The notes under the pieces: model-generated | Databases searched by the model: none | What the model saw: the letters and a program-made list of their open reading frames with translations, nothing else | What the model was told of the DNA's origin: nothing | NCBI GenBank assembly: GCA_965649765.1 | Contig: OZ287758.1 | Location: 19,716,001 to 19,780,000 of the forward strand | Source of the DNA: Bispira polyomma | Taxonomy: Eukaryota | Length of the DNA: 64,000 bases | Reading direction: 5' to 3' | Made by a program: the position numbers and the translations under genes | Shown here: positions 9,137 to 41,714 of the stretch, in pieces | How positions within the stretch are numbered: position 1 is the first letter of the stretch | Layout: every line of letters begins with the position of its first letter

Positions 9137-9369
9137 CTTGCATGGTTCTACACAAAGGCGATGCGTTAATTCGTGTGAAAGGTTCCAAGAATAATCGTGC
9201 CGGAAAGGTTTTAGGAAGGAAGGGGTTGACATTGGCCACAAATGATAAGGCTGACGACAAGCTGGTGGTGATTTTCAAGCCGCCTGTTACTGTAGGGAAT
9301 GTCACCTTGTCACACAAGTTCACATGTCTCATCACTCTCTACGTCAATGATGATCAACAAGCTGGTAGC
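9137..9369 (+). CDS. Core exon of novel paralogue A (putative secreted discoidin/galactose-binding-like beta-sandwich protein)
   Basis: TTTTTAACAG acceptor and AGC|GTAAGT donor; 233 nt, phase 1 to 0. Encodes CMVLHKGDALIRVKG..KVL..LATN..D.L...F.PPVTVGNVT..F...TLY.., which aligns with exon 40817-41049. Confidence 0.85.
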
Positions 9370-9374
9370 GTAAG

Positions 9375-11302
9375 TAGTCAGTCATAAGAACTGTTATATT
9401 GCCAAGCTTTGTCAGTCATAAGAACTTTTATAATGCCAAGGTTAGTCAGTCATAAGAACTGTTATAATGCTAAGGTTAGTCAGTCATAAGAACGGTTATA
9501 ATACCAAGGTTAGTCAGTCATAAGAACTGTTATAATGCCAAGGTTAGTCAGTCATAAGAACTGTTATAATGCCAAGGTTAGTCAGTCATATGGAACGGTT
9601 ATAATGCCAAGGTTAGTCAATCATAGGGAACTTTTATAATGCCAAGGTAAGTCAGTCATAGGAACTGTTATAATGCCAAGGTAAGTCAGTCATATGGAAC
9701 TGTTATAATGCCAAGATTAATCAGTGATATGGAACTTTCATAATGCCAAACTTAGTCAGTCATGGGGATCAATTGTAAGGCCAAGTTTATTCAGTCATGG
9801 GGAACTATTATGAGACCAATGTTAGTCAGTTATAAAGAATTGTTATAAGGCCAAAGTTAGTCAGTAAAAGAGAAATATTATAATGCCAACGTTAGTCAGT
9901 CATAGCGAACTGTTATAATGCCAAGGTTAGTCAGTCATAAGAACTGTTATAATGCCAAGGTTTGCCAGTCATAAGAACTGTTATAAAGCCAAGGTTAGTC
10001 AGTCATATGGAACGGTTATAATGCCAAGGTTAGTCAGTCATAGGGAACTGTTATAATGCCAAGGTAAGTCAGTCATAGGGAACTGTTATAATGCCAAGGT
10101 TAATCAGTGATATGGAACTTTCATAATGCCAAACTTAGTCAGTCATGGAGATCAATTGTAAGGCCAAGTTTAATCAGTCATGGGGAACTATTATTAGACC
10201 AATGTTAGTCAGTCATAAAGAATTGTTATAATGCCAAAGTTAGTCAGTCAAAGAGAAATGTTATAATGCCAAGGTTAGTCAGTCATAGCGAACTGTTATA
10301 ATGCCAATGTTAGTTAGTCATAGTGAACTGGTATAATGCCAAGTTTAGTCAGTCATAGCAAACTGTTATAAGGCCAAGAAAGGTCAGTCATAGGGAAATG
10401 TTGTAAGACCAAGGTTAGTCAGTCATAGCGAACTGTTATAAGGCCAAGGTTAGTCAGTCATGGGAAACTATTATAAAACCAAGGTTAGTCAGTTATAAGG
10501 AACTATTGTAAGGCCAAAGTTAGTCAGTCTTGAAAAACTATTGTAAGGCCAAGGTTATTCAGTCATGGGAAACTTTTGTAAGGCTAAGGTTAGTCATTTA
10601 TGGGGAGCTATTGTAAGGTCAAGGTTAGTCAGTCATGGGGAACTATTGTAAGGTCAAGTTTAGTCAGTCATGGGGAATTATTTTAAGGCCAAGGTTAGTC
10701 TGTTATGGGGAAATGTTATAATGCCAAGGTTGGTCAGTCATGTTGAAATATTATAATACCAAGGTTAACCAGTTACGGGAACTGTTATAAGACCAAGGTT
10801 AATCAGTTATAGGGTACTGTTGTAAGGCCAAGGTTATTTAGTCATGTGGAACTATTGTAAGGACAAGGTAAGTCAGTCATAGGGAAATGTTATAATGCCA
10901 AAGTTGGTTAGTCATGGGGAACTATTGTAAGGACAAGGTTAGTCAGTCATAGGGAAATGTTATAATGCTAATGTTATTCAGTTATAGAATAATTTTGTAA
11001 GGCGAAGGTTAGTCAGTCAAAAGGAAATGTTGTAAGGCCAAGGTTAGTCAGTCATGGGGAACTATTGTAAGGCAAAGGTTAGTCAGTCATGGGGAACTAT
11101 TGTAAGGCCAAGGTTAGTCAATCATAGGGAAATGTTATAATGCCAAGGCTATTCAGTTATAGGATACTGTTGCAAGACGAAGGTTAGTCAGTCATAAGAA
11201 ACTATTGTAAGAGCAAGGTTAGTCAGTCATGGGGAACTATTGTAAGGTAAAGGTTATTTAGTCATAGGGAAATGTTATAATGCCAACGTTAGTCATTCAT
11301 AG
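9375..11302 (+). repeat. 34-35-bp minisatellite, about 55 copies, intronic
   Basis: Unit about AAGGTTAGTCAGTCATA(G)GGAACTGTTATAATGCC. Starts directly after the exon donor at 9370. Confidence 0.97.
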
Positions 11303-11619
11303 GTGTTTTTTTAAAGCAGCTTTATTTACCCTTTTTGCACAAAATAATACACAATAAAAATCATAGGAGGGTGAGGGTGTAAAACCCCCAGCCACGGCTT
11401 AACAAAAACATTTCGTATGCAGTATGAAGAAATAAAAAAGTTTTAGACATTTTAATTACGTTTTTGTTATTAAAGAACACAATCTACAATAGTGACAAAC
11501 AGAATTTCAGAAGATACAAGTACTACAAGAGTACATCACTTCGTATTTAGACATTATTGCATAAAATGATAAAAATATCAATGTCTTATATCACAACCGG
11601 GTGTGTAAAATTCAGAAGT

Positions 11620-12025
11620 TTTACCTAAGTAACCCCTTTAAATATAGTTTTACCTAAGTGTAGTAGAACCCCTTTATATGTAGTTTTACCTTAGTATAGT
11701 AGAAACCCTTTAAGTATAGTTCTACCTAAGTGTAGTAGACCCCCTTTAAGTATAGTTCTACCTAAGTGTAGTAGACCCCCTTTAAGTATAGTTCTACCTA
11801 AGTGTAGTAGACCCCCTTTAAGTATAGTTCTACCTAAGTGTAGTAGACCCCCTTTAAGTATAGTTCTACCTAAGTGTAGTAGACCCCCTTTAAGTATAGT
11901 TCTACCTAAGTGTAGTAGACCCCCTTTAAGTATAGTTCTACCTAAGTGTAGTAGACCCCCTTTAAGTATAGTTTTACCTAAGTGTAGTAGAACCCCTTTA
12001 AGTATAGTGGAACCATTTTAAGTAT
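11620..12025 (+). repeat. 36-bp minisatellite, about 11 copies
   Basis: Unit TTTAAGTATAGTTCTACCTAAGTGTAGTAGACCCCC; the central copies are identical. Confidence 0.97.
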
Positions 12026-12479
12026 AGCTGAGTTTGGTAAGAATTACGAATAAGTAAAAGTAGTATGCTAAACTTTAATAGGCATTTTCCTATGAAAAAT
12101 AAACATCAAGAAAAACCACATCATTATTATATGATTCGTTAGAACTTTGTTTAGTCCCCTTAAATTTTTAACTTAACTGCATTTTACTGTAGATCGCAAT
12201 TTAATTTTAAAAAAATCTTTAATTTAGGTTAATAATATACAGTAGAAAATTTAATTTCAATACATCATGCTCTCATTTTTTGTAACTCCATGTTCGTCAA
12301 GATGAACTAAAGACGGCCGTTTTCATTAAAATACAGAACATTCACACAAACATAAAATATACACTCACAAATGCAAATAAACATACACACACAAAAAAAG
12401 AAAAACAGTCATTTGTGATACTTTATGACATATTTTTCAAAGAAATGTTAAAATCGAACCATGGGCTTGCTGTGCTTAT

Positions 12480-13727
12480 ATGTACAGTAGTAGTTACTAA
12501 GGAGACATGCTTCTGTCTTAACATGTCCAGTAGTAATTACTAGGAAGACATGCTTCTGTGTTAACATGTGCAGTAGTAGTTACTAGGAAGAAATGCTTTT
12601 GTGCTAACATGTCCAGTAGTAGTTACTAGGAAGACATGCTTCTGTCTTAACATGTCCCTTAGTAGTTACTAGGAAGACATGCTTTTGTGCTAACATGTCC
12701 ATTAGTAGTTACTAGGAAGACATGCTTCTGTGTTTACATGTCCGTTAGTAGTTACTAGGAAGACATGCTTCTGTATTAACATGTCCATTAGTAGTTACTA
12801 GGAAGACATGCTTCTGTGCTAACATGCCCAGTAGTAGTTACTAGGAAGACATGCTTCTGTATTTACATGTCCATTAGTAGTTACTAGGAAGACATGCTTC
12901 TGTGCTAACATGTCCATTAGTAGTTACTAGGAAGACATGCTTCTGTATTTACATGTCCATTAGTAGTTACTAGGAAGACATGCTTCTGTGCTAACATGTC
13001 CATTAGTAGTTACTAGGAAGACATGCTTCTGTGTTTACATGTCCATTAGTAGTTACTAGGAAGACATGCTTCTGTCTTAACATGCCCAGTAGTAGTTACT
13101 AGGAAGACATGCTTATGTATTTACATGTCCAGTAGTAGTTACTAAGGAGACATGCTTCTGTGCTTACATGTCCAGTAGTAGTTACTAAGGAGACATGCTT
13201 CTGTGCTAACATGTTCAGTAGTAGTTACTAGGAAGACATGTTTCTGTGTTTAAATGTCCAGTAGTAGTTACTAGAAAGACACACTTATGTGCTAACATGC
13301 TTCAGTAGTAGTTACTAAAAGGACGTGCTTCTGTGTTTACATGTCCAGTAGTAGTTACTAGGAAGACATGCTTCTGTGTTTACATGTCCATTAGTAGTTA
13401 CTAGGAAGACATGCTTCTGTGCTAACATGCCCAGTAGTAGTTACTAGGAAGACATGCTTCTGTATTTACATGTCCATTAGTAGTTACTAGGAAGACATGC
13501 TTCTGTGCTAACATGTCCATTAGTAGTTACTAGGAAGACATGCTTCTGTGTTTACATGTCCATTAGTAGTTACTAGGAAGACATGCTTCTGTCTTAACAT
13601 GCCCAGTAGTAGTTACTAGGAAGACATGCTTATGTATTTACATGTCCAGTAGTAGTTACTAAGGAGACATGCTTCTGTGCTTACATGTCCAGTAGTAGTT
13701 ACTAGGAATACATGCTTCTGTGCTAAC
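12480..13727 (+). repeat. 43-bp minisatellite, left block (about 29 copies)
   Basis: Unit AGTAGTTACTAGGAAGACATGCTTCTGTGCTAACATGTCCATT. Resumes at 20012 after a LINE insertion. Confidence 0.97.
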
Positions 13728-16700
13728 TTTTTTTTAACAAGTTTTATTATCACATTAAGACATTACAATACAATTACATTGCAGACATACACAAAATACG
13801 ATATCACAATGTTACTTAAAACAAAAAACGACAAAAACACATTTATCATATTAGTACAGGAGCAACCATTTCAATTATTTTAGATACATGTGATCTCATC
13901 TATTGAAGCTATATTATAAGTAGTTGCAAAATTAAAAAAAAGCAAAATATTACTTTATAATTAACTGATGCCTACAAGTTTACCAAAGGAATCTTTAAAA
14001 ACTTGAGATTTTCCATTTTTACTGTTGAGGAGCGACATTGTCTGAAGTTTTTGCCCAAGTATAATTATAAATTCTTTAAATAAAAGTGGTTTATCACAAG
14101 ACTTTTTGTTATTTATGTACCATTTCCCTAGTAAAATCAGATAATTTAATCTAAGTAGATATTAATCGTTATAAAAAGGTATACCAAGTAATATTTTACA
14201 TACTGTTAAACAAAACTTTGTATCAAGATTATTAGCCATCCAGGTCTCAAGGTTTTTCCAGAAATTAAAAGAAGAAACACAATAAAATAAGTGGTGTTCT
14301 AAGGTATCTACGAGGTTCTTATCACAGTATAGGCAGATTGAAGATTCAGATATATTCCATTTAAAAAGTTTATCCCTGCATTTCAATGTTCTGTGCAACA
14401 CTTTATATTGAGCAGATAAGGTTCCCCCTGTTTAACTTTTATGTTAGAGCAAATATGTCATCCCAGTTTATAACTTTAAGAAATGGGAATAGGTCTATCT
14501 ATGTGGTTAACGAAGTGGATTCTTTGTATTTTTTATCTACAAATTCCCAATAGATATCTTGGTTCTTTATACATTTGAGGGGTTTTGCCATCTCTGCAAT
14601 ATTTATATAGATATCATCTTGAAGTATGATATCTTTTGAATTACTTGTTTGAATTCTTTCTAGCCAAGATTTTGGAATTGCCTTTTTGGATGACATAGTA
14701 CTCTAAAGTGTTATTTTCAACTGAAATTTTGATCGTAGTGACTCAAAGGGCAGCACATCCCATCTGGAATCTAAAATATCTTTGAGTTTAATTTTGGTTG
14801 ACCAATCTTTAATTTTGCAAATTGAACTGTTGATGTATGAATTATCTTTTTGAATGAATTGATTATAAAGTAAAAATTCATTCAATATATCATTGGTATT
14901 GCTTGGTGTCCTAGACTTGATTGAAAACCACCCATTTTGTACTTACTGATTGAATGTTGTTTTTGCAACCTGATAACTTTTCTTTAGTAGTTTAGAATTG
15001 AGCTTTTCATGGCCTATGTTTAATAATTCCCAGGACAAATTGTTCCATTTTCTTACAGTTTCGTCAGTTAACCTCTTTATCCAGATTATTTTTTGAACAT
15101 CATGAATGCAGTAGATATCTGACATCTTTAAATCACCATTCTTGAGATTGCTTACTATGGTTGATCTTTTAACTCGTGGGGGTTTCTATCCCAAAAGAAA
15201 TTAAAAATCATTTTTTCAATCTTGTCAAGAACACTGATGGGTGTGTATAAGTTACAGAATAAGTGGATGAATTGATGAATAACCAAAGTCTTGAGTATAG
15301 TTATCTTTCCTCTCCACGAGAGAGACTTTGATCTCCAGATAAAGAATATTTCCTCTACTTCTGCTAATCTTTCTGAAAAATTTAATCTGATGCTAGTCTC
15401 TGAGTTCTTTGAAAACCAGATTCCTAGAGTTTTAAATGGACCTTTTCTGATCCCAATCTTTTTTAGTTCTTTTGAAAAATTTAGGGATGACAAATTGAAA
15501 TTTCCAAGTGGTATAATCTCTGTTTTATCTAAATTTAGCTTTAGGCCAGAATACAATCCATATTTAATAAATAAGTTAATTGCTCTTTCTTATGACTTAA
15601 CATCTTCTAAAAATAAAGTTGTGTCATCAGCTAGTTGTATTATTTTATATTCTTCTTTATTAATTTTAATTCCTTTAATATTGCAGTTACCCTTTATTGC
15701 CAAAGAAACTATTTCAGCTACCAAAATAAAGAGTAATGCAGAAATGGGACAACCTTGCCTTATACCTGTACTTAGTTCAAAATAGTTTGATAGGTACCCA
15801 TTATTAGACATACATGAGAATATATTTTGATATAAAAATTTGATCCATTTAACAAAATTTTTACCAAAGTTGAATACCTTCAAAACTTCAAAAAGAAAAG
15901 GCCATTCGATGGTGTCAAATGCTTTTTCAAAGTCTATCAGTTAGTCCTATTTTAGAAAAAAAAAAATTTCGTGGCCAACTCTCCCATATTAGGTTTATTG
16001 GTCTTATTTTGTAGATTTTTATGTCAGGAAAAATATTAGACCAGGTAACTCTGTGTCAAAGTGTCCGAAATATAAAAAAAAGTAAAAATCAAGATGGCCG
16101 CCATGTCAACAGATGAAATCCAATTTTTATCATATATCAACTTCTAGACCAGCTAGAAACTTACTTTTTGTCTATACCTATGTTTTTGGGGTCAAGGAAT
16201 CCAATAAAGTACATATTTATAATATTTACCCAGCATTTATAGAATAAATCCACAATGGACAACATTTAAGTAGAAAAAAGTACACTGATTTTCCTCTGTC
16301 ATGTTTAAAGGCATGTTATGTTCAGTGCCGTTCGAGTTTGTGGTGTGCAATCATTATATTCTGTCAAAAGGATTAATAGATTCAAGGTATTATCAATCCA
16401 TGGGCATTTGTTAACACATTGTTGCAGATGAAGATGTACCAATACTTCAGTAAAGGTATTTATTATACAACTTCTAAAATAAGTCATTTTAGCTGAAATT
16501 TGCATCCATAATATACCGTCAGTAGATTTATGCTTAATATATAAAATATGTGCATCTATTATGCCAGTTGGTTAAATTGAAAGTAAGAATTTTAGTTATT
16601 AAGCACATCTCACAAACTAATAGTACCACAAATCTGACCACTGTAGATATATTCATCAGTGTATTGGCATAATACCATCCAACATCCTTATGGGATAATT

Positions 16701-16859
16701 TCTTCCATTTGACCTATATTCTTAGTATTATAACAAATTTCTGTCATGTCATGTCATAATTAACTTGTACAGATTAACATATACTGGCATTCTTTTACAT
16801 ATTGCACAACACTCTTGAATAATAATTTACTCTGGGGATTAAATAGTTCCCATATTCAT

Positions 16860-17943
16860 TTACACAATATTAATTTCATCGTTTGTGGCAAAGTCATCAG
16901 TATTACAGCAATCATCATTACACATACAGACTACCATACAAGGGTATCCCTTTTGTCGACAACGACATTTCTTTGTACTACAAGGAGTGGCAGACTTGCA
17001 AGAACACTTCAATATGTGTAGCACTTTCTTTGGCGCAGGTGGTTGGGGCATCCACAAAATGGATATGTCACTTCCATTTATAATCCATCCATAGCCATGT
17101 GGGGAAGGAATTTCCATTTGACTTTCCAAACATCTCTCCCGGATTGTAGCTTGATAGTTTGCTTTTCTGATGTGTAGAATGGCACTATCATGGCATGGAG
17201 GCAGCTTTGTGATTTCAATAGTTTGCCTATTCCATTTCTCACTAAGCACATCATTGGTGTTGGTACAATGTGCTGAATTATACAAGTAACATATAGCCTT
17301 CTCTGCCTGTTTTAATGTTTCAGCATCTGGGTCAAAGTTCTCACCTAGGGATTTCATGGCCTGGCAAAATTCATAGTTTTCCATTGCAAGTGTCACTACT
17401 GTTGTTTTCCCACGTCCAGCAAATCTACTTGTGGAGTCATACCAATTAGACCTTTACACACTCTCTATCCTAGACTGTCAGTAATACTTGTCACATTGAT
17501 ATATGACCATGTTTTATTTTTTTGTACTCTAAACAACAATAGTAATTTTTCCGTAATACACAAGAAAACAGTCAACACAAGGACATCTGTCTCTGGTGAT
17601 CTGAGCAGGATTGGTGCATCACTTTCTCAGCTAGCATGTTTGGCATGAAGGAGAAGGCGTGTATTGGCTTCTTCATGATTGGAATACAGATCAACTTGAT
17701 GTGTGCGATCCCCATTCCTTTTAACATCAACTTGAATACCTGCAGTGTTAGATGGTCATATGGGGCATTTGGTTTCAGTGACTGAAGTACAGCCATGACA
17801 TCTACTATGTGTGTTATGTTAGCCAATAATGGAAGTGGCGCATCTGCAGCCTCATCCCTGAGTATGTGAAGGAGATCAGATTTGTCTGCCAGAGATCTGG
17901 GTACACTGATGAGTTCATATGACATCAGTTCGTCATGGCTCAC
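16860..17943 (-). pseudogene. Academ-type transposase remnants (XPG/FEN1-like nuclease C-terminus plus Cys-rich CXC-like tail)
   Basis: KLPPC...LHIRKANYQA.....PSPHGYGW followed by CSCK..CSTKKCRC....C..VC.C, plus upstream fragments YEL..VPRSL and VDVMAVLQ. Broken into several frames. Confidence 0.75.
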
Positions 17944-18721
17944 CTGACCTCTCCGTCCACCGTCATACAGATGTGCAAATACAGCAGTCGCTTTGTCTTA
18001 GCTCATTCTATGAATTGAAATAGCTTAACTTAACAATAAAATATTTAAAAATACTCACCTCTGATGAGTCACTATTGATGAAGACTGAACTGAAGATTTT
18101 GTATTCATAATCATTATGGTGTGTATATAACCTGCCCAGTTATGAAGACGCAAGTGATGTATTGCCCATTAACAAATGACTTTCAAATCATTTGAGCAAA
18201 GTCAGGCATACAGTGCGGATGTGCAGAGAATTAAGAATTAAGTCATGCCTCATTAACTATATATATTGCATTTTTATACATGTTTGACTGCTTTAAAAGT
18301 CTTGTGTATAACCTAAAAAGTACAAAAATTATTCTATTTTCATTTAAAATAAAAAACAATTTTTTTATAGTTGTATCCGAAAGATGAAAAACTGAACTTG
18401 ACATACTTTTGAACATGACAGGAAAATCAGTGTATTTTTTTCCACTCAAATAAGCTACATTGTGGATTTATTCTATAAACGTTGGATAAATATTATTAAT
18501 ATGTACTTTATTAGATTCCTTGACCCCAAAAACATAGGTATAGACACAAAAAGTAAGTTTCTAGCTGGTCTAGAAGTTGAGATATGATCAAAATTTGATT
18601 TCATCTGTTGACGTGGCGGCCATCTTGAATTTTACTTTTTTTTTCATATTTTGGACACTTTCTCACAGGGTTACCTGGTCTAATATTTTTCCTGACATTA
18701 AAATCTACAAAATAAGACCAA

Positions 18722-18940
18722 TGTGAAGCGTGAAAGGGAGTTGCGCCCCTTGCCGCCGGATGCTACGGGGTGGGTTAATACTCAATCTGGTTGCTTGCTG
18801 ATCAACCAGCTGTTAACCCCCCTACCCTTACGACCTTGCTATGCCCATGGACTTTACGATTGGATCACTGATTCTGCTGTTGCACTTTAGAAGATGCCTG
18901 GCACCAATAAAGCGCGTTAAAAATGCATTATTATTATTAT
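18722..18940 (+). mobile_element. Short retroposed L2-type 3' end inserted inside the right Academ TIR
   Basis: Splits AATAAGACCAA|TAAACCTAAT, which is contiguous in the left TIR. Ends GCACTTTAGAAGATGCCTGGCA..(ATT)n, a motif also present at about 33246. Confidence 0.75.
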
Positions 18941-20011
18941 TAAACCTAATATCGGAGATTTGGCCACAAAATTTTTTTTTAAGCCTCTCCTGAGAAATAG
19001 CCAAAGGACTAAGTGTCAAAATACCTTTCTTTTTGTTTAAATCAGTATATGATATCAAACCTTCTATTGTCCTTATATTTTCGCCAAGATATCTGCCTTT
19101 AATGTATCCAACTTGGTCAGAGCTTATTAAATTTGGAATGATACTTTGCAGTTTTATAGATAGGGCCTTAGCTAAAATTTTATAGTCAGTTGCTAACAGA
19201 GTCACAGGATTTCAAAAATCTCATATCTTTTTGTGGTTTTGGTATTAAATTTAGTAAAGCTCTACGTTGTCCGTCTGGTAACTGACCTGTATCAAAACTA
19301 TACAAGTAACTATTATGAAGTGGCAATTTCAATTCTTCCCAGAAGATCTTATAAAAATTTGTGGTAAAGCCATCAAGTCCAGGTGACTTATCATTGGCTA
19401 TAGATTCCAGTGCTTTGGATATTTCCGTTAATGTTACCTTTTCTTCACAAATTTTTTTATCAGATTCATTTAGTTTTGGAATATTCTTATTTTTTAGGAA
19501 ATCATCAGAACTATTGAGAGAGGGTTTAATTGTACTTGCGTATAGCTTAAAGAAAAAGTTGACCTGTTCTTCAATCATTTCATTTGGATCATCTATTTCC
19601 CTTCCATCTGGTTTAATAATCTTCTTTATATATTTGGTATTAAAGTTCCTTCGTTCAAGGTTTAAAAAATAGTTTGAATTTTTTTCTCCATATTCTATCC
19701 ACTTAGCCCTTGACCTAATAACTATTCCATTGGTTTTGACTTGTTGGATGTTCTCTAGCTCACTTTTTACATCTTGATACTTGAGATAGTTTTCTTCATT
19801 TTCATCAATTTTATTTTCAAGTTTTAGAGGCAGGTTTTCTAGTTCTGGTTCTTTTTTCCTTTGTGCCTTAGTTTTCTGAATAGCATATTGAATTGTTTCG
19901 GTACGCAACTGACATTTATTATATTCCAAAAAGATATTTTTATTTTCAAATCTGACATTTTTGTTTACTGAAGACATTGTCTTTTTTATTAAGTCAACAT
20001 AATCAGGGTCA

Positions 20012-20710
20012 GTGCTAATATGCCCAGTAGTAGTTACTAGGAAGACATGCTTCTGTACTAACATGTTCAGTAGTAGTTACTAGGAAGACATGCTTCTGTG
20101 CTAACATGTTCAGTTGTAGTTATTAGGAAGACATGCTTCTGTGCTAACATGTTCAGTTGTAGTTATTAAGAAGACATGCTTCTGTACTAACATGTCCAGT
20201 AGTAGTTACTAGGAAGATATGCTTTTGTATTTACATGTTCAGTAGTAGTTACTAGGGAGACATGCTTCTGTGTTTACATATTCAGTAGTAGTTACTAGGG
20301 AGACACGCTTCTGTGCTAACATGTCCAGTAGTAGTTACTAGGACGACACGCTTCTGTGTTTACATATTCAGTAGTAGTTACTAGGAAGACATGTTTCTGT
20401 GTTTACATATTCAGTAGTAGTTACTAGGACGACACGCTTCTGTGTTTACATATTCAGTAGTAGTTACTAGGAAGACATGTTTCTGTGTTTACATATTCAG
20501 TAGTAGTTACTAGGAAGACACGCTTCTGTACTAACATGTCCAGTAGTAGTTACTAGGAGACACGCTTATGTGCTAACATGCTCAGCAGTAGTTACTAGGA
20601 AGATATGCTTCTGTGTGTACATATTCAGTAGTAGTTACTAGGGAAAAAGCTTATTTGCTAACGTGTTCTGAATCAGAAGTAGTGAATAGGAAGACATGCC
20701 TCTGTGCTAA
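20012..20710 (+). repeat. 43-bp minisatellite, right block (about 16 copies)
   Basis: Same unit as 12480-13727, continuing across the LINE. Confidence 0.96.
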
Positions 20711-21261
20711 TAACTGTGTTGTTGTTTTTTGCAGACGGTTCATAAGAAGTTCAAATCAGTTGGTGTGGTGGGTTTGTCATTTTCGTTATATATAAACGTT
20801 TACTTGTCTAAAAATTGTTACAATTAAATTGCTATTTCTCAAAGCTGTAGACGTACATATTCTCACCAGGAATTAATTAACCATGATGGTTAATGATCTG
20901 AATTGATCAAAATCTCTTTCACCTGGTATAAAGTCAAACTAATTTCAGTTAATTTTTAGAAACTATTAAATTATTGAAATACTTCTAAAATTAAAATTGT
21001 TCACTGTATTTTAAATATTTAACATAATATTTTTTTTTAGAAATATACACGCTTTTGTAGTTAAAAAAGGCTGGACAAAATGCTTTCCTGCCATTATTGT
21101 TTAGTAGGTAGTTTTGTCAATATTATGTTATTACCAATATATATCTGTACTGTTTGCTTTGATTGTGCTTAATTCGAGCTCTAAGAATAGTGATTTCGAT
21201 AAAATGGTGAACATCTTTTATTGAAGCATTATTATGTATAACTAGATCCTCTATTTTACAG

Positions 21262-21402
21262 ATAAAAGCCAGCGAATGTGATAAAGTAAAAACAAGCCGT
21301 ATTGACCTTAATGAGCACAACGTGAACAAACTGGTATTTGTTCCAGACTACTCCTACAGTTCAGAAGTGGGCATATCAAAGCTTCGGATTGAGTTGTGTT
21401 AG
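21262..21402 (+). CDS. Terminal coding exon of novel paralogue A
   Basis: CTATTTTACAG acceptor, phase 0, 141 nt: IKASECDKVKTSRIDLNEHNVNKLVFVPDYSYSSEVGISKLRIELC*. Aligns without gaps to 41574-41714. AATAAA at 21639-21644. Confidence 0.83.
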   Translation: MKASECDKVKTSRIDLNEHNVNKLVFVPDYSYSSEVGISKLRIELC

Positions 21403-24341: not shown

Positions 24342-25327
24342 CTATAACAATATAGCTTGAAATAAGAGAGCAACTTGCTCTCCTAGCTTTTGATCTTGGT
24401 GTATATAGGTCCACACACAGTCCGACGTCCAGGTGCCCTGCTGTTTAATCTGTTGTATTAGTATGTTTGCATTGTAAGCAAACGTGGCACCAGAACATCG
24501 GAAGGTGTGGAATGAAAAGAAATGTGGGTCTAATCCCATTTGAACATTGATTTTGGAAAGGGTTTTTCTGAAACAAGAGTCCATCATAACTTGACAGCCT
24601 GTGGCAGTTCTATATTAAAACAGTGGCTCATGCTTTTGAGGGTTATAGAGCTTGATGACCTCTTGTAGGGCTTTGTATGGACAGAGATTTGATTTATGCA
24701 ATTTTGGTAGACCGATAATGCTGACTTTGTTTCTGTCTTGCATCGTCTTGGTCCACTTTATGAGTATTTTGACCAAGTTTTTGGTGAAAAAGATATCACC
24801 ACCTGCTAAGCACCTGGTATTATTAAAGGTGTTAAAGGAGTTAGGTCTGAGATTCTAAAGAACCCGAAAAATGCTGTCAAGAATACAGCTTTAGAGACTT
24901 TGCCCTGACGTAATCGCTCACATAATGCTACCAGTGTTTGCAATATTTGCACATCCATTATATTTTTACGTGTCACTGACACTGGTCTGTTGATTCTAAC
25001 CGCTTTGACAAAATATTTCACTTTAGGGTGCTCTAGGCATTTGCGTGGTAGGTCATACATTATACACTTTGCCTCTATAGCTGACAGATGATTATTTGTC
25101 ATATACACTGATACTCCACTTACTACTAGACACTCCATGAACACCAAAACTACTTTGGTATTAATATTTGACAATTCAACTTGAGCATGTAGACAAAGTG
25201 ACCCAAAGTTCTTAAACAGCATATTATAACATTGCTGGGTCTTTGGTATTTTAGCCTTTTGCAGCCTAGTCCCAGCTTGCCCATACAGCTTTGCAACCAC
25301 ACTGTGATCTACAACAAAGTATAGCAT
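24342..25327 (-). pseudogene. Tyrosine recombinase of the YR retrotransposon (frameshifted)
   Basis: AFFGFFRISDL (catalytic R), HTFRCSGAT (HxxR) and GTWTSDCVWTY (catalytic Y). Confidence 0.88.
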
Positions 25328-25357
25328 CGTTAAATATCAGTTTAGTTGTTATTACTA

Positions 25358-26618
25358 TTACAAGTCCTGGTCTAGTTCTGACATGTCTACTGATACATTG
25401 AGCCACACTGGCCGTTCAACATACATCAATAATTCTCTATTGTTCTCTATAGTATTCTGGTACCTGGACAACAGGTCGGCTGTTCTATTTAACTTGCCTA
25501 TGACATGCACATACTGTAAATCTACATCTGCCAATGCTGCCAAGTACCACACATTTCTCGCACAAGCCCCTAGAAATGGGTCTCTGGCTCTACCAGATTG
25601 TAAAACTTTTACCACCGCATCATTGTCACACTTAATAAGTACTTTCTTTCCAGTCCACTGTTTATAGGATATTCTCAAAGCAAGCAAAATATTGATCATC
25701 TCTAGGTGCACATTGTCTAGATTTTTGTATCCCCTACATATTGTTAGGTGGTATACCATGTCTTTCCATCTGCCCCCTAGGCCTACCAAGCATGCATCAA
25801 GTTCTAGGACAAAATCAGCGTTTCTGTTGTCATAAATAGATATGCCATTGTACAATGGCAGAAATTTAGCGAACCATCTCAAAGTCTCTAAAGAAATCCG
25901 AAGGCAAGTCAATTTTTCCCCCATGCTGACTTCGCCTCAGAAGCTCCAACATTCTATTTTGGAAGAAACAAGCTGGTTTGACACTTTTGTGGACGTACAG
26001 CAGCAGCCCCAGAAGGGACAACAACTGTCGTATGGTACAAGTTGTTTTGTTTTGCCAATCCTTAACCACTGCATTGATCTTATTTAGTTTTTCCTCAGGA
26101 ATTGAGATGGTTCCATTTTCAGTATTTATTAGTACCCCCAAGCATACAGCTTGCGTACTAGGTGGTATGAGTTTCTTGTCACTTATGGTCAAACCTAATT
26201 TCTCCAGCAGATTGTATAGACATACATATGAGTCCTTAGCAACCGTGAACGTGCCGTAACCAATGAAATCTTGTATATATGCGTCCCCACGTCCTAGGTT
26301 TCTGAGTTCATCTGTTATATTGTCAACTGTTGGAAAAGTCAATGAGAAAGCTGTACCCAGGTAATTACTTTTATCCGCGCCTGCATTCACTCAATTGCCT
26401 TCTGGCCAACTCAAATCAATGATAACACGCCTATTGGCCGAACCGGGTTTATCTCGCATCATCAAGGGGGAACAATGACCTCCTTTTATGGGATGTTCAT
26501 CAAAAGGACCTATTATGGCTCCAAATTTGGTTTCCTCACTTAAGTATGTCTCTATGTCCCCTGGGTGTTCCATAGCCGACTTATGGTTTTGCCCTTCCCA
26601 AACGAAGTCATTTTCCAA
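25358..26618 (-). pseudogene. DIRS-type reverse transcriptase / RNase H (disrupted, RT core partly deleted)
   Basis: RRVIIDLSWP, YIQD at the YxDD position, CLGVLINT, LDACLVGLGG, HLEMINI and KCDN.AVV. Confidence 0.88.
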
Positions 26619-28920
26619 AAACCGTATTCAATTAAATCAATTAGCTGCTGATCCCAATAATTTTTTAACACCAACTTCCAATGATCTACATTCAATTGAG
26701 ACTTAACGGGTATTCTTGCTTGTTGGAAGTTGTATTTGCCACGTTTTCACTTCATAATGGGCTTTTATGGGATATGTTATTGCTGGGCCCTGATAAAACC
26801 CCTGTGTATTGGTTAATGGGTCTGACAGGGGGACAAAGTCATACATACAGTCTGTTTGTTCTAACCATAGTTTATATGCTAACACATTGTCCAATGTTTG
26901 TGTCACATCTCTATGTTTGTATAACAATGAGTGTATGGACTTGTCATCACCATTGTTGTTTATGTCAAGCACTTGTTTTTGTTCACCTCCAGTCTTTTGT
27001 ACCACATCACCTTCCATTGTGTTACTGCCAACTCTTATTTCATTTGGCTTCAGTACAACCCCTTTGTCTCTATCTCTACTTTGTTTACTTTTTACCTGAC
27101 ATCTAATTTGTCCCCCACTAACTTGGCCTGCCACACTGCGAGTTACAATGTGAGTGCTAGAGTCAACCACGTGTTTACACAAGTTAATTGTTTCTGCACC
27201 CTGACCACTTTTGTGACACAGGTTTTGTTTACTCCCGCCTCCAGTGATAGATTTGTTTTCATTTTTAGGCCCAATTAAACCCCAGGCCCCATTCTTTGTT
27301 TGTTTTGACTTATTAGCCTCCCCTCCTTTGTTTGTTTTGACTTATTAGCCTCCCCCTTCTATGAAAATATTTCACCCAATTTTGTTTTTTACTCGCTAAC
27401 AAAGCTTCCGCATTTTTTCTTTCTACTTGGGAGTTATAGAGAGTTCTAGTTTTATATGGCTCCCGTACCTGAGCCATATTTGCTTGTTTAAAACTGTCAC
27501 TGCCGACAGGGTTTTTGTACTGTTTTTCTACACCACCTCGTGTAGAATACATACTGGCCACCTTGTTATTACACATATATACATTTTTATCATGCACTAC
27601 CTGCAGCAAAACGGTTTTGGCCCTGCCTGGAAATTCCCTTGTTTTTATTCTATGTACATTGCTGCCCCCTTTATTTAAGAAAGGTGAGCAGCCTGCTGCT
27701 AGTTTTTTGAATGAAATGATTTTTTGCCAAACATACTATCTTTCTCCCGGTGACCACTCACCCCTCCCTATTTCCAAGCAGGTCGAACATATATGTTTGT
27801 GGAGCTCGCCCCGCTGCTAGTTTGGGGACAATTTTCTCATCAGAGGATAACTCAGACGAGTCTTCTACTGTGGACACCATACGTTTTGTACTTTTAGTCT
27901 TATACTTTGCTTTACTTAACTTGTTTTTGTCCTTCTGTGATGATTCTCCCATGTGTAGCAGTAATCCAGTATTGTAGTAATCACACACAAATTGTCTTAT
28001 TAAAATAAACTAAAATATATATAAGTTAAAAGTTTCTTCATACAAAAAGTCATAAAAAACAGAATTTTTGCACATTAAAATCACAACTGACTCCTTCAAT
28101 AAGTCAGTTTGAACTGATTTGTTTACCCTTTTTTTTTCACTCAGGGCCAGTCTTGTCCAATTAGGTTAGTTGCATACTTTATTACCTCAGTGATAGGGAA
28201 GGGGGGTAGGAATGCAACCCATACCATAATACACTAGTTAGCCTGGTACCCTAAACAATTAGAGTTGGGTTGGAGGCCTGACCCCTGTGATGCCTTGACA
28301 CCACAGACGAGTCTACAACCAAACTTTAACCAAACATAAAGCATGGACCAACAAGTGAATTGATGACTGACCCAGTAATTGCTTTCATCACTATTGTGAT
28401 TGATTGATAACCAAGGAAGTTGACATTAAATTTATGGGCCCAGTGGACACAAAAGAAACACAATACACAACATAATTATAACAGTTTGGGAAATTTATTA
28501 TAAGCCCTTTTTAATAATTTCTATGTAGCACTATATGGGTGAATTTTCCGTATTAGTATGTCTTTAAAATTTTACAATATGTCCCTTCATCTCGTGTTCA
28601 GTTCCTTTCAATGACTAAAACATAGATACTTCATCCTGGTACCAAAATATGAAAGTCCATGTCCTCAGATCATTTTTTAACACTTAAAAGTCCATAGGCA
28701 CAAGTGTCATATATAACATAAAGTCCTCATGTAGTGCTGATGCAAAGGCGTCATCCTGATTACAACAAATAGGTGTGATAATTCCATCCTGATGTATCAT
28801 AACAGGAGTAGCAATTCCTTCCTGAGCATTGCAAAAGTGAAATTCCCCTGATTATCAAGTCCAGAAGTAATGATTGCATTCTGCCATAGTAACTCAGGAG
28901 TGATAATTCATTCCTGATGT

Positions 28921-32732: not shown

Positions 32733-32739
32733 GCAAGTA

Positions 32740-34305: not shown

Positions 34306-34489
34306 GTTTTTTATTGTATATTTTCTGCATCATAGCCTAAAGATAACTAATGTACAATACATATAAATAAAGTTTATACTGAAAAATTATATTAAAAACC
34401 TAATAATTGTATTTTAATGAGCTGTTTAAACAATTTAAGCTATAAAAAGAGGTTATAGTTTTCTGCATAGAAATGCAGAATTTTATTGG

Positions 34490-34862: not shown

Positions 34863-35089
34863 CTAACAGTGGAAACTGAGTATTGGGTAAATCATGGGGC
34901 TTTTTGAGCAAGTAATGGAATGCCAAAAAATATCGTCAATATAATTTTTGATGTCATAATAATGGGAAAGTATGTCCCACATAATCCTGTCGCTTACTTG
35001 GTTCAATATATGGTTGCCATGGTGACTCTCAAATCTAATATAATCAGTTTGAATGTAAAATGCTCTGCATTTGAGAATATCAAATTGAA

Positions 35090-35815
35090 ATCTGCCATAA
35101 CTCCTGAATTTCACAAAGATTTACAATGGTTCAGGCTATTTCTGGAAAAATTCAATCGGGTCTCTTTCTTCTATCACAAACCCACCACAGCTTTGGTGGA
35201 CATGGATGCCTACTTAACGGGCATGGGGGAATATATAACCAAGTGTACACCCTGGCTATACGAACTGAACTACAAACGCAAAATATTGCTTCTCTGGAAT
35301 GCTAAATATTTTGTGGCACTTCAGCTAGGGTGGGGGGGGGGGGGGGGGGGGGCGTGTGGCAAGTCCAAAGAATACTAACTAAATGCGATAACCAGGTAGT
35401 GGTTAGTGTTTTCACTACTGGTAGAACCAGAGACAGTGTACCAGCGTTATACACCCACAACATGTTTATGCTAACAAGTCAACACAATTGACCTTAAGGT
35501 TATACACATATTGGGTGAAAATAACAGGGTGGCTGACCTGTTATCATGTTGGTCAGATAACCATCAAAATCATGTAACATTACATAAGCTGGTGGTGCCA
35601 TGTAAACCATGATTACTTGCATGTAAATGACCAGATATAAAGTTACATGTCCTCCTGTAGTGTAATGTATTTGAGATGTTAATTTAGTCCAGCGTCTACT
35701 GTTCACCAATGCCTCAAAAAAGCTGCCTCTGGCATTTTCTAGCTCACTTGCTAGGGCCTATAATGCCATGTACAGGGTATACATGGCGTTTACTGCCTTC
35801 ATGGATCAACCCAGG
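35090..35815 (+). mobile_element. DIRS/Ngaro-type remnant (RNase H and start of YR)
   Basis: EFHKDLQWFRLFLEKFN, MDAYLTGMG, KCDNQVVVSV..TGRTRD and AYNAMYRV. Confidence 0.78.
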
Positions 35816-35983
35816 TTAAGCCGTCATTCTGGCTAAGTGATCTAAGATAATACAAAAAACAAACATGTGAACTGCATACAATTCCTTAGCGACCAGTTTG
35901 CCATCTGTGTCCTGTCTGGGCCTTGCATAATGCATTAGCTATAATACCTACAACTAACAACTTTTGCTTCAATACAAACTAAA

Positions 35984-36400
35984 TCAGACATGGTTTCTGC
36001 TAACTGATACCAAAGTCCGAGTGCATTTCAAAAAAGAAATTAGACATGGTACACTTAGGACTTGTCTTCCATGCCTCCAATACAGTCGTTTTGCCATGGC
36101 ACTACCCCCCTCAGGGCATCTCTTTGTTCCTCGGCTACTCAGCCTTGATTTTCCAGCAGTGTGTCCTGTGTGTGGGGGGTCTACTGGGTTTAAGTGCTCT
36201 CCTCCCTGGTTGATATTTGCACTTCTAAGCATGTTGTGGAGGACTACACAGGCTAGGGTTATGGTAGCTACCACATGTTGTTCCTTCTGCATCTTTAACC
36301 GTAAAAGTCTAAACCTCGTCACTAATATTCCAAAGACATTCTTCACTACCCTTCTGCCCTGGGATATCCTCAGTGCACGGGCCACCTTAGATAAGGGCAA
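35984..36400 (-). mobile_element. PIF/Harbinger (DDE_Tnp_4, HARBI1-like) transposase C-terminal fragment
   Basis: SQGRRVVKNVFGILVTRFRLL...ITLACVVLHNML matches the characteristic R..VE.aFGiL..RFR..aC.vLHN motif. Confidence 0.8.
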
Positions 36401-36519
36401 AAGTGATATATAAAACACAAAAGTGATATATAAAACACAGCCGTATAGCACTTTGACCTTTTTTTACATCATCTAACATCCAATGTTAATACGTAACAAG
36501 ATACAACATTTACTACTAA

Positions 36520-37490
36520 TGTACATGACCTTAGTTTAAATACTGACTTTTAATTTTAAAGTGAATTTCAGAAGAGCTTAACCAAGCTTTATGGTAAGGA
36601 ACCTTATTGTAACCTTTGAAATGTTAAGGTAAAGTTCTATTTTCTACTACTACTGATGGTATATACTATGTATTATAAAATATAGTGTAAACATATAGTA
36701 TTTACAATACCCAAACGGCAGTGTCGCTCCTGAGCGTCTGAATGAATGAAACGTGAATGACTGTGGGGTAACAGATAAAAATACGATTATTTCCCTTAAA
36801 ACATGTCTAACCTTATATGCTGTTAGTGGCACTAATTTACCTTGAACTTTGTACATAAATACTGGCGAATCCGTTTTGTTTTTATTAATTCTGAACATAG
36901 TTTCAAGAGCTGCTACAGGACATAACAGAGAACGTCCTAGCTCCGGTAACTGTACTACATGGAACTGATTGTACTTTTGTAAAGTTTTTGCCCACTGAAG
37001 TACAACATGTATTCCCCATACAAAATCCTCCCACGTCAAGGATTGAAATTACTAGCACTGGTTGAAACCGGGTTTAAGAGCCGAAAGAAACCGAAAAAGG
37101 CAGTTAAAATTAATGCCTTATAGACATATGCATGTGGGAATGCAGAAACATGATGAAAGATAGATGTGAGAATAGGGATGGTGATTATCCCTTTTAATCT
37201 AGTAGGGGGTGGAAAGTGAAAGAGACTTGAAAAATAACTTTTTTGGAGAGTGAGCAAAAACACTTACAGAATAATCCCATAGATAAAAGTAATATTAAAT
37301 TGCTAAGAGGTAACTTTGAATGCAGGGTGATTTTAGCCCATGCTGAGCCATGCATTCACAAAATTGGAGGATGACATGCAGGGATGTCAGTTCATATGTG
37401 AGCTCTGCCCCTTTATACAGGGTTTTGGAGGCAAATCGTGAGGTTGCGTACTGTCCCAATTGCAAAATTGAAAAATCTATCTTGCCAATC
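36520..37490 (-). mobile_element. DIRS/Ngaro-type tyrosine recombinase remnant
   Basis: AFFGFFRL, WAKTLQ, LCPVAAL and FTFHSFRRSGAT. Confidence 0.85.
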
Positions 37491-39909
37491 AGTACCAAGG
37501 TAGCGAGCTATTGGGATCGAGGTAGCGACCTATCGTGGATGACAACGACCTATCTTTATGATTGTAAGTGGTTGTAATGACCTATCTGTGTGAATCGGGC
37601 GGATATATTTGATTAGTATGAGTCAAATTCCTGATCTGACCTAATCTATGGGTCCTTGCTCACGACCTATCGCTACAATCGTTAACCAATACGATTAAAT
37701 TTTCCTTTCCGATTTATTCGCTTATGTAAAGAATCGTGAGGCCATGCAAAATTGTTTTACACCAGAATATAAATATTTTTCTATTTTTCAAATTAAGTTC
37801 TTGAAACCTGCTATCTACCGGTTTTTACAGTTCTTGTGAAGATCTCAGAATTACTTGGAATTACTGATTCATTAGGTGAGGATTCATTCTCCATACAAGT
37901 ACCTTTTTGTGACTAGATTTTTCTTATACAAAATCTGTTATCATTCATCTTTACAGATGGCACTTGTAAAATGGAAAACAAGATGGTTGTCACAATTGAA
38001 ACAAGATTTTCAGCTATAAACAATTAATTCCTTAACCGAATTGGTGGATTCAGTAAACAACATGTAGTGGGATAAGTTGTCAGCTTTTTTTTTTGAGGGG
38101 GGGGGCTCCTGTCTCATCTCAGAATAGTTTCTATGTCTCGTACAGTCTTTTATACATGTAAGTAGTGAGCTTACTTTGTGCCCGTCTGGGGCATTAGTTT
38201 CTTCTGACCTGACTTGTTACAGTTCCCTGTGTTCCTCACTGAAGTGGTCAATGCTTGTGTGGGTTGACTTATGTGTACAGAGGCGCCTTGAGGGTGGAGA
38301 CTCAATTAATGAGATAGCCAACATAAAAGGCCACTTTGGTCCTCCTTATGACACTAATAACACATGCACTTGAAAAAACACTGGGAAAGGGTAAACAGTT
38401 ACAAACAAAGATATTGGTTCAAATTAAACCAATCGTTTAAGCTGTGTAAACATAATAGGAAAACACTTTATGCAAAGAAAGATGTTCAATACATGTAGAG
38501 CTGATCAAATTATTGTATTCAGAATGAATTATAAAAAGTGCATGTGTTATACTGGTAATTTTGAGTGGCATTTTATAAAGTAATATATTTAAGTACTTGC
38601 GCAGTTTTAGTGAGGGGTTGTTAAGTTCACAGTGTCCTTCAGACCCCTTCACAAAGTTCACGTTATGATTAGTTTTATTGAGAGAACCAAACCAGACAAT
38701 CGTTGATATTTTGACAACAGACTGAAATTGATAGTTTTAATGTCATGACACGGAAATTAACTTTCTCAAACAAAGGCGGGTATATTTTAATTGCGAATCA
38801 AGCTATTCATTAAGTGTCATATTCGTGTTTTACACATAAAAAAACAATTAAAATTTCTAAAGTAAACATCAAATGGAGACACATGCTGAAATGTCGCTTG
38901 CTAAAAATTCATCAAAGATAATGTAAGTTGATTTAAATTGCAGAACTAAATTGTGTTTGAAACTTCGACCAATGCTTATTAACAAACTGTTTACAATCAA
39001 ATACAAAAAAGGCAGCATGTCATTTAAATATGTACATGCAACTTTTGATCGTAGCATATTAAACCAATGGTTAAGTCATTTACTTGAAGATAATGTGCCA
39101 ACTATGGCCTTCTTAGTAACTTTACAAGTGGAGTTAGATGTATATGCCCAGTTCGTGTGGAGACAAACCGTCCCAAATGAAGAGGTGACATTTTGTAGGT
39201 GAGTGGTACTAGAGTTCGTCCTGGTCTGGCATTGTCTTAGGTGTTGATGTAGGGAGGGTTAGGGCACTGTGTGGGCGGAATGTAGAACCTCTATCAAACA
39301 ACTACAACCTCCTCAAACATTAACACACGTTTTACAAGGTTTACAATAGTGTCATTTGATGTTACTTTCTGTGCGTCAGTCACCTGTCATTAATTTATGA
39401 GAGTTTGAAATAATTTTTTGTTGATAATTGTAAAGAGATACTTTGTAAAAACTTCATTCTAAAAAAACTGATTGTCAGTTGCAGTTTATCATGTATATAT
39501 AGTGGAGAGAAATTACAAGGTTATGAATGTATTGTAGAACTTCAAAAGTAAAGAGAAGTAAGTCTTTTAACTATCTTCTTATCCAAATTTATGTTTCATT
39601 GAATGCTAAAGTGAGGTGTATGATATTATTATTATACATTTTAAAGTGCTTTATTAATGCTAGGCATCGTCTAAAGCGTAACAGCAAAATTAGTGTTGCA
39701 ATCGTTAAGTATATTTTGGGAATTTTGAAGTAAAATACACCAGTTGTGTTTTTCTCCGTAGTTAAACTTGGATAATGGTAGACAAGTACTGGGGAACTCA
39801 GGTCTCCCATCACCCATGTTCTAGTATATAGAAAGGTACACCCAGTCAACATTAGAGGGTACACACCAGTTTCTGACCTTTCGAGCTGGTTGGGTGTTCT
39901 GTTGAGTGT

Positions 39910-40095
39910 CGCTGATAGAGTAGAGTGTACCTATGGACTGTGGAGTGTACACTTCAGTATTAGAGCTCTTTGTTCACACTGTATGCTTGTCTCTGAGTGT
40001 TACTGATAGAGTGTACCTATTGACTGTAGAGTGTACACTTCAGTATTATAGCTCTTTGTTCACTCTGTATGTTTGTTCTTGCAGTGCTGAATTAC
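39910..40095 (+). repeat. Two-copy tandem duplication of about 88 bp ending at a splice acceptor
   Basis: AGAGTGTACCTAT.GACTGT.GAGTGTACACTTCAGTATTA.AGCTCTTTGTTCAC.CTGTATG occurs twice. Confidence 0.85.
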
Positions 40096-40144
40096 TCCAT
40101 TCTCTTCCTGATCTGGGCAGTTGCCTCTGTCTCTCTCGTTGAAG
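40085..40144 (+). CDS. Signal-peptide exon of novel paralogue B
   Basis: TTGTTCTTGCAG acceptor and GAAG|GTATTT donor; 60 nt, phase 1 to 1. Encodes hydrophobic xLNYSILFLIWAVASVSLVE-G, in frame with 40817. The start codon/upstream exon is unresolved. Confidence 0.65.
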
Positions 40145-40525
40145 GTATTTTTCTGTTTAAATAGCTTCAGGCGCATTTATAAACAGTAACAAATTCTAGT
40201 ATTGTTTAGGTGACAATAAATTGTACTAAATATTATGACATGTCAACTGGATATGTGAGTTTTTACTTGTCCAATAACCACCACCTTTGTCCTTATTCCA
40301 CCACACACTGCATACACTCTTAACTTGAACTTTAGCTTTTTAATGCAAGTATAACATGGTACTGCAACTTTATAACAGAGATTTAAAAATTATTTAATAT
40401 ATAGTTGGTATTTGTGGCCAAAATAGGATTTTTAAGTGCAGCAGGCGGATTGTTTAGCTCTATTTATCATACTGGGTTGTCTAATTACAGGCCAAAGTGG
40501 TGTGCAAATAGAGAGTAATAAGTGG

Positions 40526-40718
40526 GGTTTTTTTTTGTTTTTTTTTTAAATTTGGATATTTAACGTTTACTCTAGTACCTGTTTAGGTTATATTAAGACG
40601 GGTAGTTGGAAATGCTGGATGAAACACTGCATACAGTTGATCAAGATTCTGCACTGAAACCAGCGGCCCACAGTAAGAAACTACCCACCTTTCCCACATA
40701 GGCATTGACGGGATGCGA
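40526..40718 (-). mobile_element. 5'-truncated family 1 SINE with poly(A) tail, intronic
   Basis: Reverse complement of the SINE from the B box onward. 14-bp TSD AGAGTAATAAGTGG (40512-40525 / 40719-40732). Confidence 0.92.
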
Positions 40719-40816
40719 AGAGTAATAAGTGGTACATCATGTACAGGGTTCAAAGAATATGTACAGTATTTGGTGGTTGCTGATGTTTGATGTCATCTTA
40801 CATGTCACCCTTTTAG

Positions 40817-41049
40817 GCTGTATGAATATGACCAAGTATGAGGCCAATATCACACTGACCGGTACAAGGACTAGAACAGTGCCCAAAGTATTAACAAGGA
40901 GGAACTGGATCGTACTAGCACAAAACAGTTTAGGAGAGGACACCCTACATATCCACTTCTATAATCCTGTGACATTGGGCCGTGTGACCTTTATGGAATG
41001 GTTTGCTGTTGGATATACACTGTATGCAGACAATGAAGAGGTTGCACAT
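40817..41049 (+). CDS. Core exon of novel paralogue B
   Basis: CCCTTTTAG acceptor and CAT|GTGAGT donor; 233 nt, phase 1 to 0. CMNMTKYEANITLTG..KVL..LAQN..D.L...F.NPVTLGRVT..F...TLY.. is homologous to 9137-9369. Confidence 0.87.
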
Positions 41050-41573
41050 GTGAGTCACAGGTTGTATAGTCTGCTAGAGTTCAGAAGTTGTCAGATGTTT
41101 CCAACAACATGGTCTGTATAGTGTGTGTTTAGAAGTTGACAAAGGTTTAAAACCATATGGTCCTCTTTGTGTGTTGTTGTTTAGAAGTTGCCAAAGTTTA
41201 AAATAACATTGTCAGGTAGATAATATTATAATTCGCCATGTTTATAGATATACAAATATGTATGTCCGAGTCAATATCAAACATCTGAATCAATCCAGCT
41301 ATACCCTAAGTTATATCAAATATTTACTGCTACACTTGCTAAACTAGTTTTATCAAGATTAGATGTATGCCCAGTATCAATTTGTATTGCAATACTGTTA
41401 TAGTATAGAATGGATACATGATGAAGCATTTAAAACCTGAGAGCTGTACCTTGACACTGTAGTGACTTTTGTTACACCATACTGCTACTGGGACACCAAG
41501 ATGTAGTGATCTTTTTATTGCACATCACTAGTTTGACCAGAATATTTAACTTCCTATGTCTATATATCTGCAG

Positions 41574-41714
41574 GATGAATTTACGGACCTCTTCAACCAA
41601 CAACTTGTCACTTTAAACATCGTTAAATATAACGTGAAAAATATACAGCTTCGAATCAAATATGGCCATTCCAGGGAAGTGGGAGTGAAGAGACTCCGAG
41701 TGGAAATCTGTTAA
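41574..41714 (+). CDS. Terminal coding exon of novel paralogue B
   Basis: CTGCAG acceptor, phase 0, 141 nt: DEFTDLFNQQLVTLNIVKYNVKNIQLRIKYGHSREVGVKRLRVEIC*. AATAAA at 41879-41884. Confidence 0.85.
   Translation, partial: DEFTDLFNQQLVTLNIVKYNVKNIQLRIKYGHSREVGVKRLRVEIC

Follow-up and report, generated by a model that had tools for sequence, protein, structure and literature searches.

A lineage-restricted family of small secreted proteins in Bispira polyomma, most likely descended from a stand-alone discoidin

Stand-Alone Discoidins and the Bispira polyomma Locus

The galactose-binding-like superfamily of jelly rolls includes the CBM32 modules of bacterial enzymes, whose galactose site is made up of His, Arg and Phe, the F-type lectins, whose fucose motif has the form His...RxDxxxxR/K, and the discoidin (F5/8 type C) domains, for which a terminal Cys pair and secretion are typical among the animal members. 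Families of diverged secreted domains that are confined to one lineage are frequent in invertebrate genomes. Here we describe two genes, A and B, in a 64,000-nucleotide stretch of Bispira polyomma DNA (assembly GCA_965649765.1, contig OZ287758.1, positions 19,716,001 to 19,780,000 of the forward strand; hereafter the window), together with the family to which they belong. With a probability of roughly 0.62, we read them as old paralogs among annelid secreted, stand-alone binding proteins that derive from a discoidin domain. An initial annotation of the window had proposed secreted stand-alone jelly-roll proteins outside any named family; orthologs, a fragment fold model and an intron match with retinoschisin support this proposal, the fold being only partly shown.

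Retinoschisin (RS1), like the predicted products of A and B, is secreted and stand-alone, with a signal peptide and one Cys-bounded domain. Exon 4 of its gene starts at c.185, two bases ahead of the Cys63 codon (c.187), and the last base of exon 5 is c.522 (PMC7549600), which makes Cys219 residue 45 of exon 6. A W-R-W triad is conserved in discoidin domains (PMC2789033) and the discoidin spikes are binding loops (PMC6497308). Secreted invertebrate adhesives, such as echinoderm Nectin and Sfp1, employ discoidin domains for galactose or N-acetylglucosamine binding or for cohesion (PMC7037938), but Nectin and Sfp1 are large, multi-domain proteins with canonical domains. The tube worm Serpula vermicularis has a lectin, SVL, with specificity for N-acetylglucosamine.

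Genes A and B

From conserved splice sites, we infer that A and B are each spliced from three coding exons. These are listed here with the long second intron of gene A (nt, nucleotides; L042 belongs to a second species, assembly ERZ22147071, hereafter species 2):

8693 to 8750, plus strand: gene A signal-peptide exon, coding part; ATG at 8693, 19 codons and 1 nt, phase-1 donor at 8751
9137 to 9369, plus strand: gene A core exon; 233 nt, phase 1 to 0, starting 2 nt ahead of the N-terminal Cys
9370 to 21261, plus strand: gene A intron 2; 11,892 nt, mostly minisatellites and decayed retroelement pieces
21262 to 21402, plus strand: gene A terminal exon; 141 nt, phase 0, 46 codons and a stop, final residue Cys
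40085 to 40144, plus strand: gene B signal-peptide exon; hydrophobic, in frame, phase 1 to 1, conserved in species 2
40817 to 41049, plus strand: gene B core exon; 233 nt, phase 1 to 0, ortholog at L042:9990-10216
41574 to 41714, plus strand: gene B terminal exon; 141 nt, phase 0, 46 codons and a stop, final Cys, ortholog at L042:10442-10582

The core and terminal exons stand as first annotated in position, size, phase and AG/GT ends, as does the hydrophobic signal-like exon of gene B. The signal exon of gene A is new relative to the initial annotation; it was found by a scan for hydrophobic phase-1 exons, and the spacing from it to the core exon is 386 nt. Another candidate for this exon, 8286-8342, was dropped, having an in-frame stop and reading better as the end of an intron. 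The precursor encoded by the three exons would have about 143 residues, and the chain from the first Cys 123.

Global alignment exon by exon, compared with 2000 shuffles, gives 27 identical residues of 77 for the core exons (z 13.9, with the best shuffle far below) and 14 of 46 for the terminal exons (z 8.4). Over the spliced core and terminal exons there are 41 identities (33-34%), where about 38 had been counted by hand. We rejected a single two-domain protein made up of A and B, since the two genes carry separate signal exons and stops. Gene A had also been credited with two extra Cys residues (FTC and SEC) that could form a second disulfide. Both are present in its sequence, but the FTC Cys is absent from all A-type core exons of other samples and the SEC Cys from both A-type terminal exons found, and such a bond would be at most species-specific.

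Orthologs and Selection

When 1.8 billion cluster representatives were scanned with a core-exon profile, four short unnamed proteins matched, each an exon fragment called on an animal contig of an ENA assembly. A single 2.6-Mb contig of species 2 carries two of them, A-type then B-type, 20.6 kb apart and on one strand, and both of these orthologs have signal, core and terminal exons with phases identical to those of the window genes. The species-2 A ortholog has an equivalent hydrophobic exon, with an identical end, 771 nt 5' of the core exon. A-type core exons orthologous to 9137-9369 occur at L043, L044, L045 and L046. Besides the A-type exon on the species-2 contig, marine assemblies supplied two others, one from a panel/rock biofilm sample. 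In a tree of the terminal exons A groups with A and B with B, with support of 92/90 and 93/94, which is under the starred level.

The ratio of nonsynonymous to synonymous divergence (dN/dS) is approximately 0.16 for the B orthologs (61% identical, dN 0.26, dS 1.6) and 0.45 for the A orthologs (43% identical), both being rough values with dS near saturation. Two A copies within the species-2 assembly give 0.10 and more distant A pairs 0.27-0.54, again roughly. The orthologs and these ratios agree with the initial argument that intact frames imply selection. Taken together, the comparisons support A and B as real genes under constraint. Species 2 also contains degenerate copies of gene B (L048 and L049), with a frameshift-like core stretch, stops in the terminal exon and damaged signal exons. 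Were the exons unexpressed relics or chance look-alikes, such decay would be expected, and the missing start-codon exon of B and the lack of an RNA run for the region would find an explanation; this is nevertheless very unlikely, as frames and splice sites are kept across saturated synonymous divergence, dN/dS is well below 1, gene order is conserved, and A and B align with z values of 14 and 8.

The Family in the Genome

The genome (1.035 Gb in 75 contigs) contains erythrocruorin linker genes and gave no match to the haemocyanin beta-sandwich, which marks it as that of an annelid. It was searched with profiles of A and B, which were then iterated. The first weak matches fell in two clusters on contig C5, and in place of the "pair" first annotated there is a family of 12 loci, two in the window, five at C5:27.95-28.04 Mb and five at C5:39.67-39.83 Mb. 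The genome search called for by the initial annotation thus added 10 members on C5; no further paralogs lie within 100 kb on either side of the window. The family size is a lower bound of at least 12 genes, and stops were found in the matched exons of 0/12 loci.

The C5 genes that were read (two members were not) have a signal exon, a phase-1 intron before a Cys, a core, and a terminal exon, in phase 0, whose coding sequence closes with a Cys or shortly after one. Their core is split by one extra phase-0 intron, the site of which differs between the clusters. These extra introns lie about 11 codons apart (L026-L029 versus L032-L038) and none is present in A or B, which points to independent intron gains or losses. 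When each group was left out in turn, terminal exons scored 17-41 bits against shuffle maxima of 6-12, and core pieces were weaker in two of the three groups. Val21, Tyr30, Glu35 and Cys46 are invariant across 12 aligned terminal exons; the first Cys is present in all N-terminal exons seen and the last in 12/12. K+R/D+E ranges from 6/15 to 21/10 per member, Trp from 0 to 2 (the gene A protein has none) and dN/dS among C5 paralog pairs from 0.24 to 0.80. The motif LR.E.C, initially taken for a discoidin signature, fails as such: its Glu is absent from the A ortholog and from all C5 members, and the register differs from that of the discoidin motif LRxExxGC, with RS1 Glu215 standing four residues before Cys219, whereas in A and B the Glu stands two before the Cys.

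The picture suggested by these sequences is of two conserved members, A and B, plus clusters under birth and death. Three weak core-profile matches, C10:31901567 (expectation value E 1.4e-4), C10:12960476 (E 0.004) and C2:63956558 (E 0.125), lie outside the PF00754 matches and may be more distant members or intermediates.

Searches of Sequence Libraries

Library searches and the fold model were run exon by exon. Neither Pfam nor NCBIfam gave a significant match for the exons of A, B, the orthologs or the C5 members; the best Pfam hint was PF22633, at E 0.11 and in one member only. A PDB sequence search with four profiles gave noise only, a feature search of the ESM Atlas no usable match, and a JGI metagenome scan no family member. 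A word-index homolog search found none with B alone or with the first profile, and with a larger profile recovered species-2 exon fragments only. Long bacterial matches (P0001, P0003, P0006, P0007, P0009 and P0010) were set aside, these being polycystic kidney disease (PKD), immunoglobulin-like, cadherin-like and leucine-rich repeat proteins matched mostly by summed weak stretches. The family was not found in the literature searched or in any family library, and no named protein covers its members. In keeping with the initial annotation, no strong full-length match to a well-described family emerged from these per-exon searches. Our verdict is that the family is lineage-restricted, and on its sequences it should not be filed under PF00754, the F-type lectins or CBM32.

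Predicted Fold and Intron Positions

A fragment model of the 77-residue core exon (predicted local distance difference test score, pLDDT, 65; predicted template modeling score, pTM, 0.52) was aligned to 48,161 chains. The best match has a Z of 4.9 and a root-mean-square deviation (rmsd) of 3.5 over 73 aligned residues, a low score that by itself would carry little weight. At least 20 of the top 50 matches are by title CBM32, F5/8C, DOC, fucolectin, XRCC1-N or DDR DS domains, and with chains recognized otherwise than by title the number is about 40. The fragment spans the N-terminal part of the matched domains in a consistent register (residues 3-94 of 137 in 2v72, 3-90 of 143 in 1xpw and 32-140 in DDR2), and what remains of these domains, about 45 residues, is the size of the 46-residue terminal exon. 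The best shape match in the Atlas has a template modeling (TM) score of 0.65, to a 108-residue cluster with a PF00754 share of 12%. The model only weakly suggests that the core exon is the N-terminal two-thirds of a galactose-binding-like jelly roll.

CBM32 and bacterial F5/8C domains (2v72, 4a42) are the best structural neighbors (2v72 with Z 4.3, rmsd 3.4 and 76 aligned residues) and are alike in total size (126-137 residues). However, identity is 5-20%, CBM32 domains are modules of bacterial enzymes, and the galactose-site residues have no conserved counterpart in the family. F-type lectins are also small secreted animal jelly rolls in tandem gene families (3cqo, Z 3.5), but the family alignments contain no conserved His, RxDxxxxR/K motif or second disulfide. 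The DOC/APC10, IFT25 and XRCC1-N domains belong to the same superfamily (Z 3.1-4.0), have short loops and bind protein partners; they differ in being intracellular and in having neither signal peptide nor terminal disulfide.

Retinoschisin resembles A and B in gene structure. In all three genes a phase-1 intron precedes the first Cys by 2 nt, and a phase-0 intron lies 45-46 residues ahead of the last Cys. In the Bispira polyomma genome, 12 canonical PF00754 matches stand as separate pieces whose first position in the 127-position model is 85-87 (intron phases unread), which suggests that canonical discoidin genes of this genome have the same last intron. The differences are that the retinoschisin domain has 157 residues (Cys63-Cys219) against 121-133 in the family, and that RS1 has an extra N-terminal segment and a Cys for octamers. 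The W-R-W triad of the retinoschisin type is absent from the family, and no sequence similarity to PF00754 was detected. The last exon is of canonical length, and the approximately 35 missing residues (77 versus 112) therefore fall in the N-terminal part, and this stretch would correspond to the region of the discoidin ligand-binding spikes.

Could these be real secreted proteins that are not discoidin descendants, built on another beta-sandwich and agreeing in intron positions by chance? The low Z, the DOC, IFT25 and CBM32 matches standing level with discoidin ones, and the failure of every discoidin sequence signature tested are what such an origin would predict, yet we consider it quite improbable, since the top 50 matches are led by one superfamily in consistent register, both flanking introns match retinoschisin, and the terminal Cys pairs and secretion point to discoidins.

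Proposed Mechanism and Ligands

A stand-alone discoidin is the most likely ancestor of the family, and the most likely model for how its members work. A discoidin domain would have been turned stand-alone by a signal-peptide exon, and splicing of the three coding exons would give the precursor of about 143 residues, from which the signal peptide would be removed just ahead of the first Cys in both A and B. The 123-residue chain would then fold as a galactose-binding-domain-like jelly roll, partly shown for its first 77 residues, and the two invariant Cys suggest that a first-to-last disulfide closes the domain. The N-terminal spike loops (approximately 35 residues) would have been lost and the binding face rebuilt, with the invariant Tyr and Glu of the last hairpin loop as its probable center. 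This superfamily uses a loop face for ligands. The Tyr and Glu probably lie on that face, and an aromatic and carboxylate pair suits a sugar site. Lacking an enzymatic part, a membrane anchor and any second domain, the proteins would act by binding only. Their likeliest targets would be glycans or polyanionic glycoconjugates in mucus, epidermis, tube matrix or microbes, with a surface that differs per paralog, and the wide spread of charge among members fits different ligands. Given the rest of this reading, a glycan ligand has not quite an even chance, and it is the first of the readings that we consider, followed by a protein or lipid partner and then by a sandwich of non-discoidin origin, with relics last.

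Retinoschisin binds the beta subunit of Na/K-ATPase and the discoidin domains of DDR proteins bind collagen. The same genes and fold could likewise serve a protein or lipid partner, the products being adaptors, matrix proteins (tube, cuticle, mucus cohesion) or receptor ligands. We regard this as doubtful. In its favor, no His, Arg or Trp of the lectin type is conserved, A and B form single, separate orthologous lines across species, as fits a fixed partner, and there is a stand-alone discoidin with a protein as its real partner (PMC6497308). However, the tandem expansion, the degenerate copies in species 2 and the higher dN/dS values within C5 better fit variable external ligands, and no candidate partner has been identified.

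Returning to discoidin-derived proteins with a glycan ligand, several results weigh against this preferred reading. Among 112 PF00754 matches in the genome, 0 fall at family loci. The best Z of 4.9 is within the tool's "common arrangement" range, and a model from a shallower alignment (pLDDT 50) had a mixed list of neighbors. In the fold check proposed in the initial annotation, Foldseek gave no match with the core-exon model, and the full alignment list was led by the galactose-binding-like superfamily, at low Z. Only the phase-0 intron match with retinoschisin is specific, because phase-1 introns after signal exons are frequent in animal secreted proteins. No RNA run containing the window region was found, the three runs found being genomic DNA, and reads over 37000-42500 are DNA contigs with no splice joints. 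Neither Trp nor His forms a conserved column in the family, an Arg such as CBM32 and F-type lectins use is not shared by all members, and galactose, where discoidins bind it, is not always the physiological ligand (PMC6497308).

What is new is a lineage-restricted variant of a known discoidin-type domain; no surprising mechanism is shown, and the interest lies in the trimmed domain and the intron-based ancestry. All sequence libraries missed this secreted gene family, and its ancestry may be legible from intron positions and fold once similarity has been lost. A tentative extension is that these are minimal "spike-less" discoidins with a ligand site rebuilt on a Tyr-x4-Glu loop. In fan worms they would make up a novel class of secreted lectins, or of proteins for tube or mucus adhesion, in which two members are deeply conserved and the tandem clusters turn over fast. 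Should they bind glycans or tube matrix, the proteins would represent a new type of small binding scaffold closed by a disulfide, and would be candidates for the fan-worm lectins of mucus, or the tube components, that are still poorly characterized.

Flanks of the Two Genes and Other Features

The start codon of gene B is probably split by an upstream intron (A|TG), because in species 2 the acceptor before TG is kept and the in-frame ATG at 40069 is not; that ATG is a doubtful start. The exon supplying the start codon was not identified upstream of 40085, and a strong GTAAGT donor at 38923 gives no simple source for the A. One upstream element is shared between the species:

38811 to 38897, strand not assigned: conserved single-copy non-coding element upstream of gene B in both species, 84% identical over 87 nt with species 2 (L042:3337-3423)

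It is a candidate promoter or 5' exon of gene B. A tandem duplicate of roughly 100 nt (39920-40085) ends at the acceptor of the signal exon, the first intron contains a short repeat of very high copy number (40570-40720), and an AATAAA lies downstream of the terminal exon at 41879.

On the 5' side of the gene A signal exon there is a strong GTAAGT donor at 8227 (8171-8232), which may mark an untranslated first exon. Minisatellites occupy 9375-11303, 11633-12008, 12465-13727 and 20012-20710 within intron 2, and candidate poly(A) signals (AATAAA/ATTAAA) are found about 190-240 nt 3' of the terminal exon. In both genes minisatellites begin past the core exon, 6 nt past it in A (9375) and at 41079 in B.

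Elsewhere in the window, a secreted C1q-domain gene (52614-54290, plus strand) has a signal-like start, one or more coiled-coil exons and a PF00386 match at E 8e-22, with a 65-nt minisatellite starting at the stop codon. Another last exon of C1q type (63372-63820, plus strand) follows an 83-nt triple repeat. Also present, at 24345-26627, 34908-37048 and 45869-47398, are decayed DIRS-like elements, which include tyrosine-recombinase pieces, and fragments of long interspersed nuclear elements. Beyond the window, contig C9 carries large PF00754 clusters at about 61-67 Mb and 31-36 Mb, with dozens of N-terminal pieces, which indicate that canonical genes of F5/8C or F type have greatly expanded in this worm.

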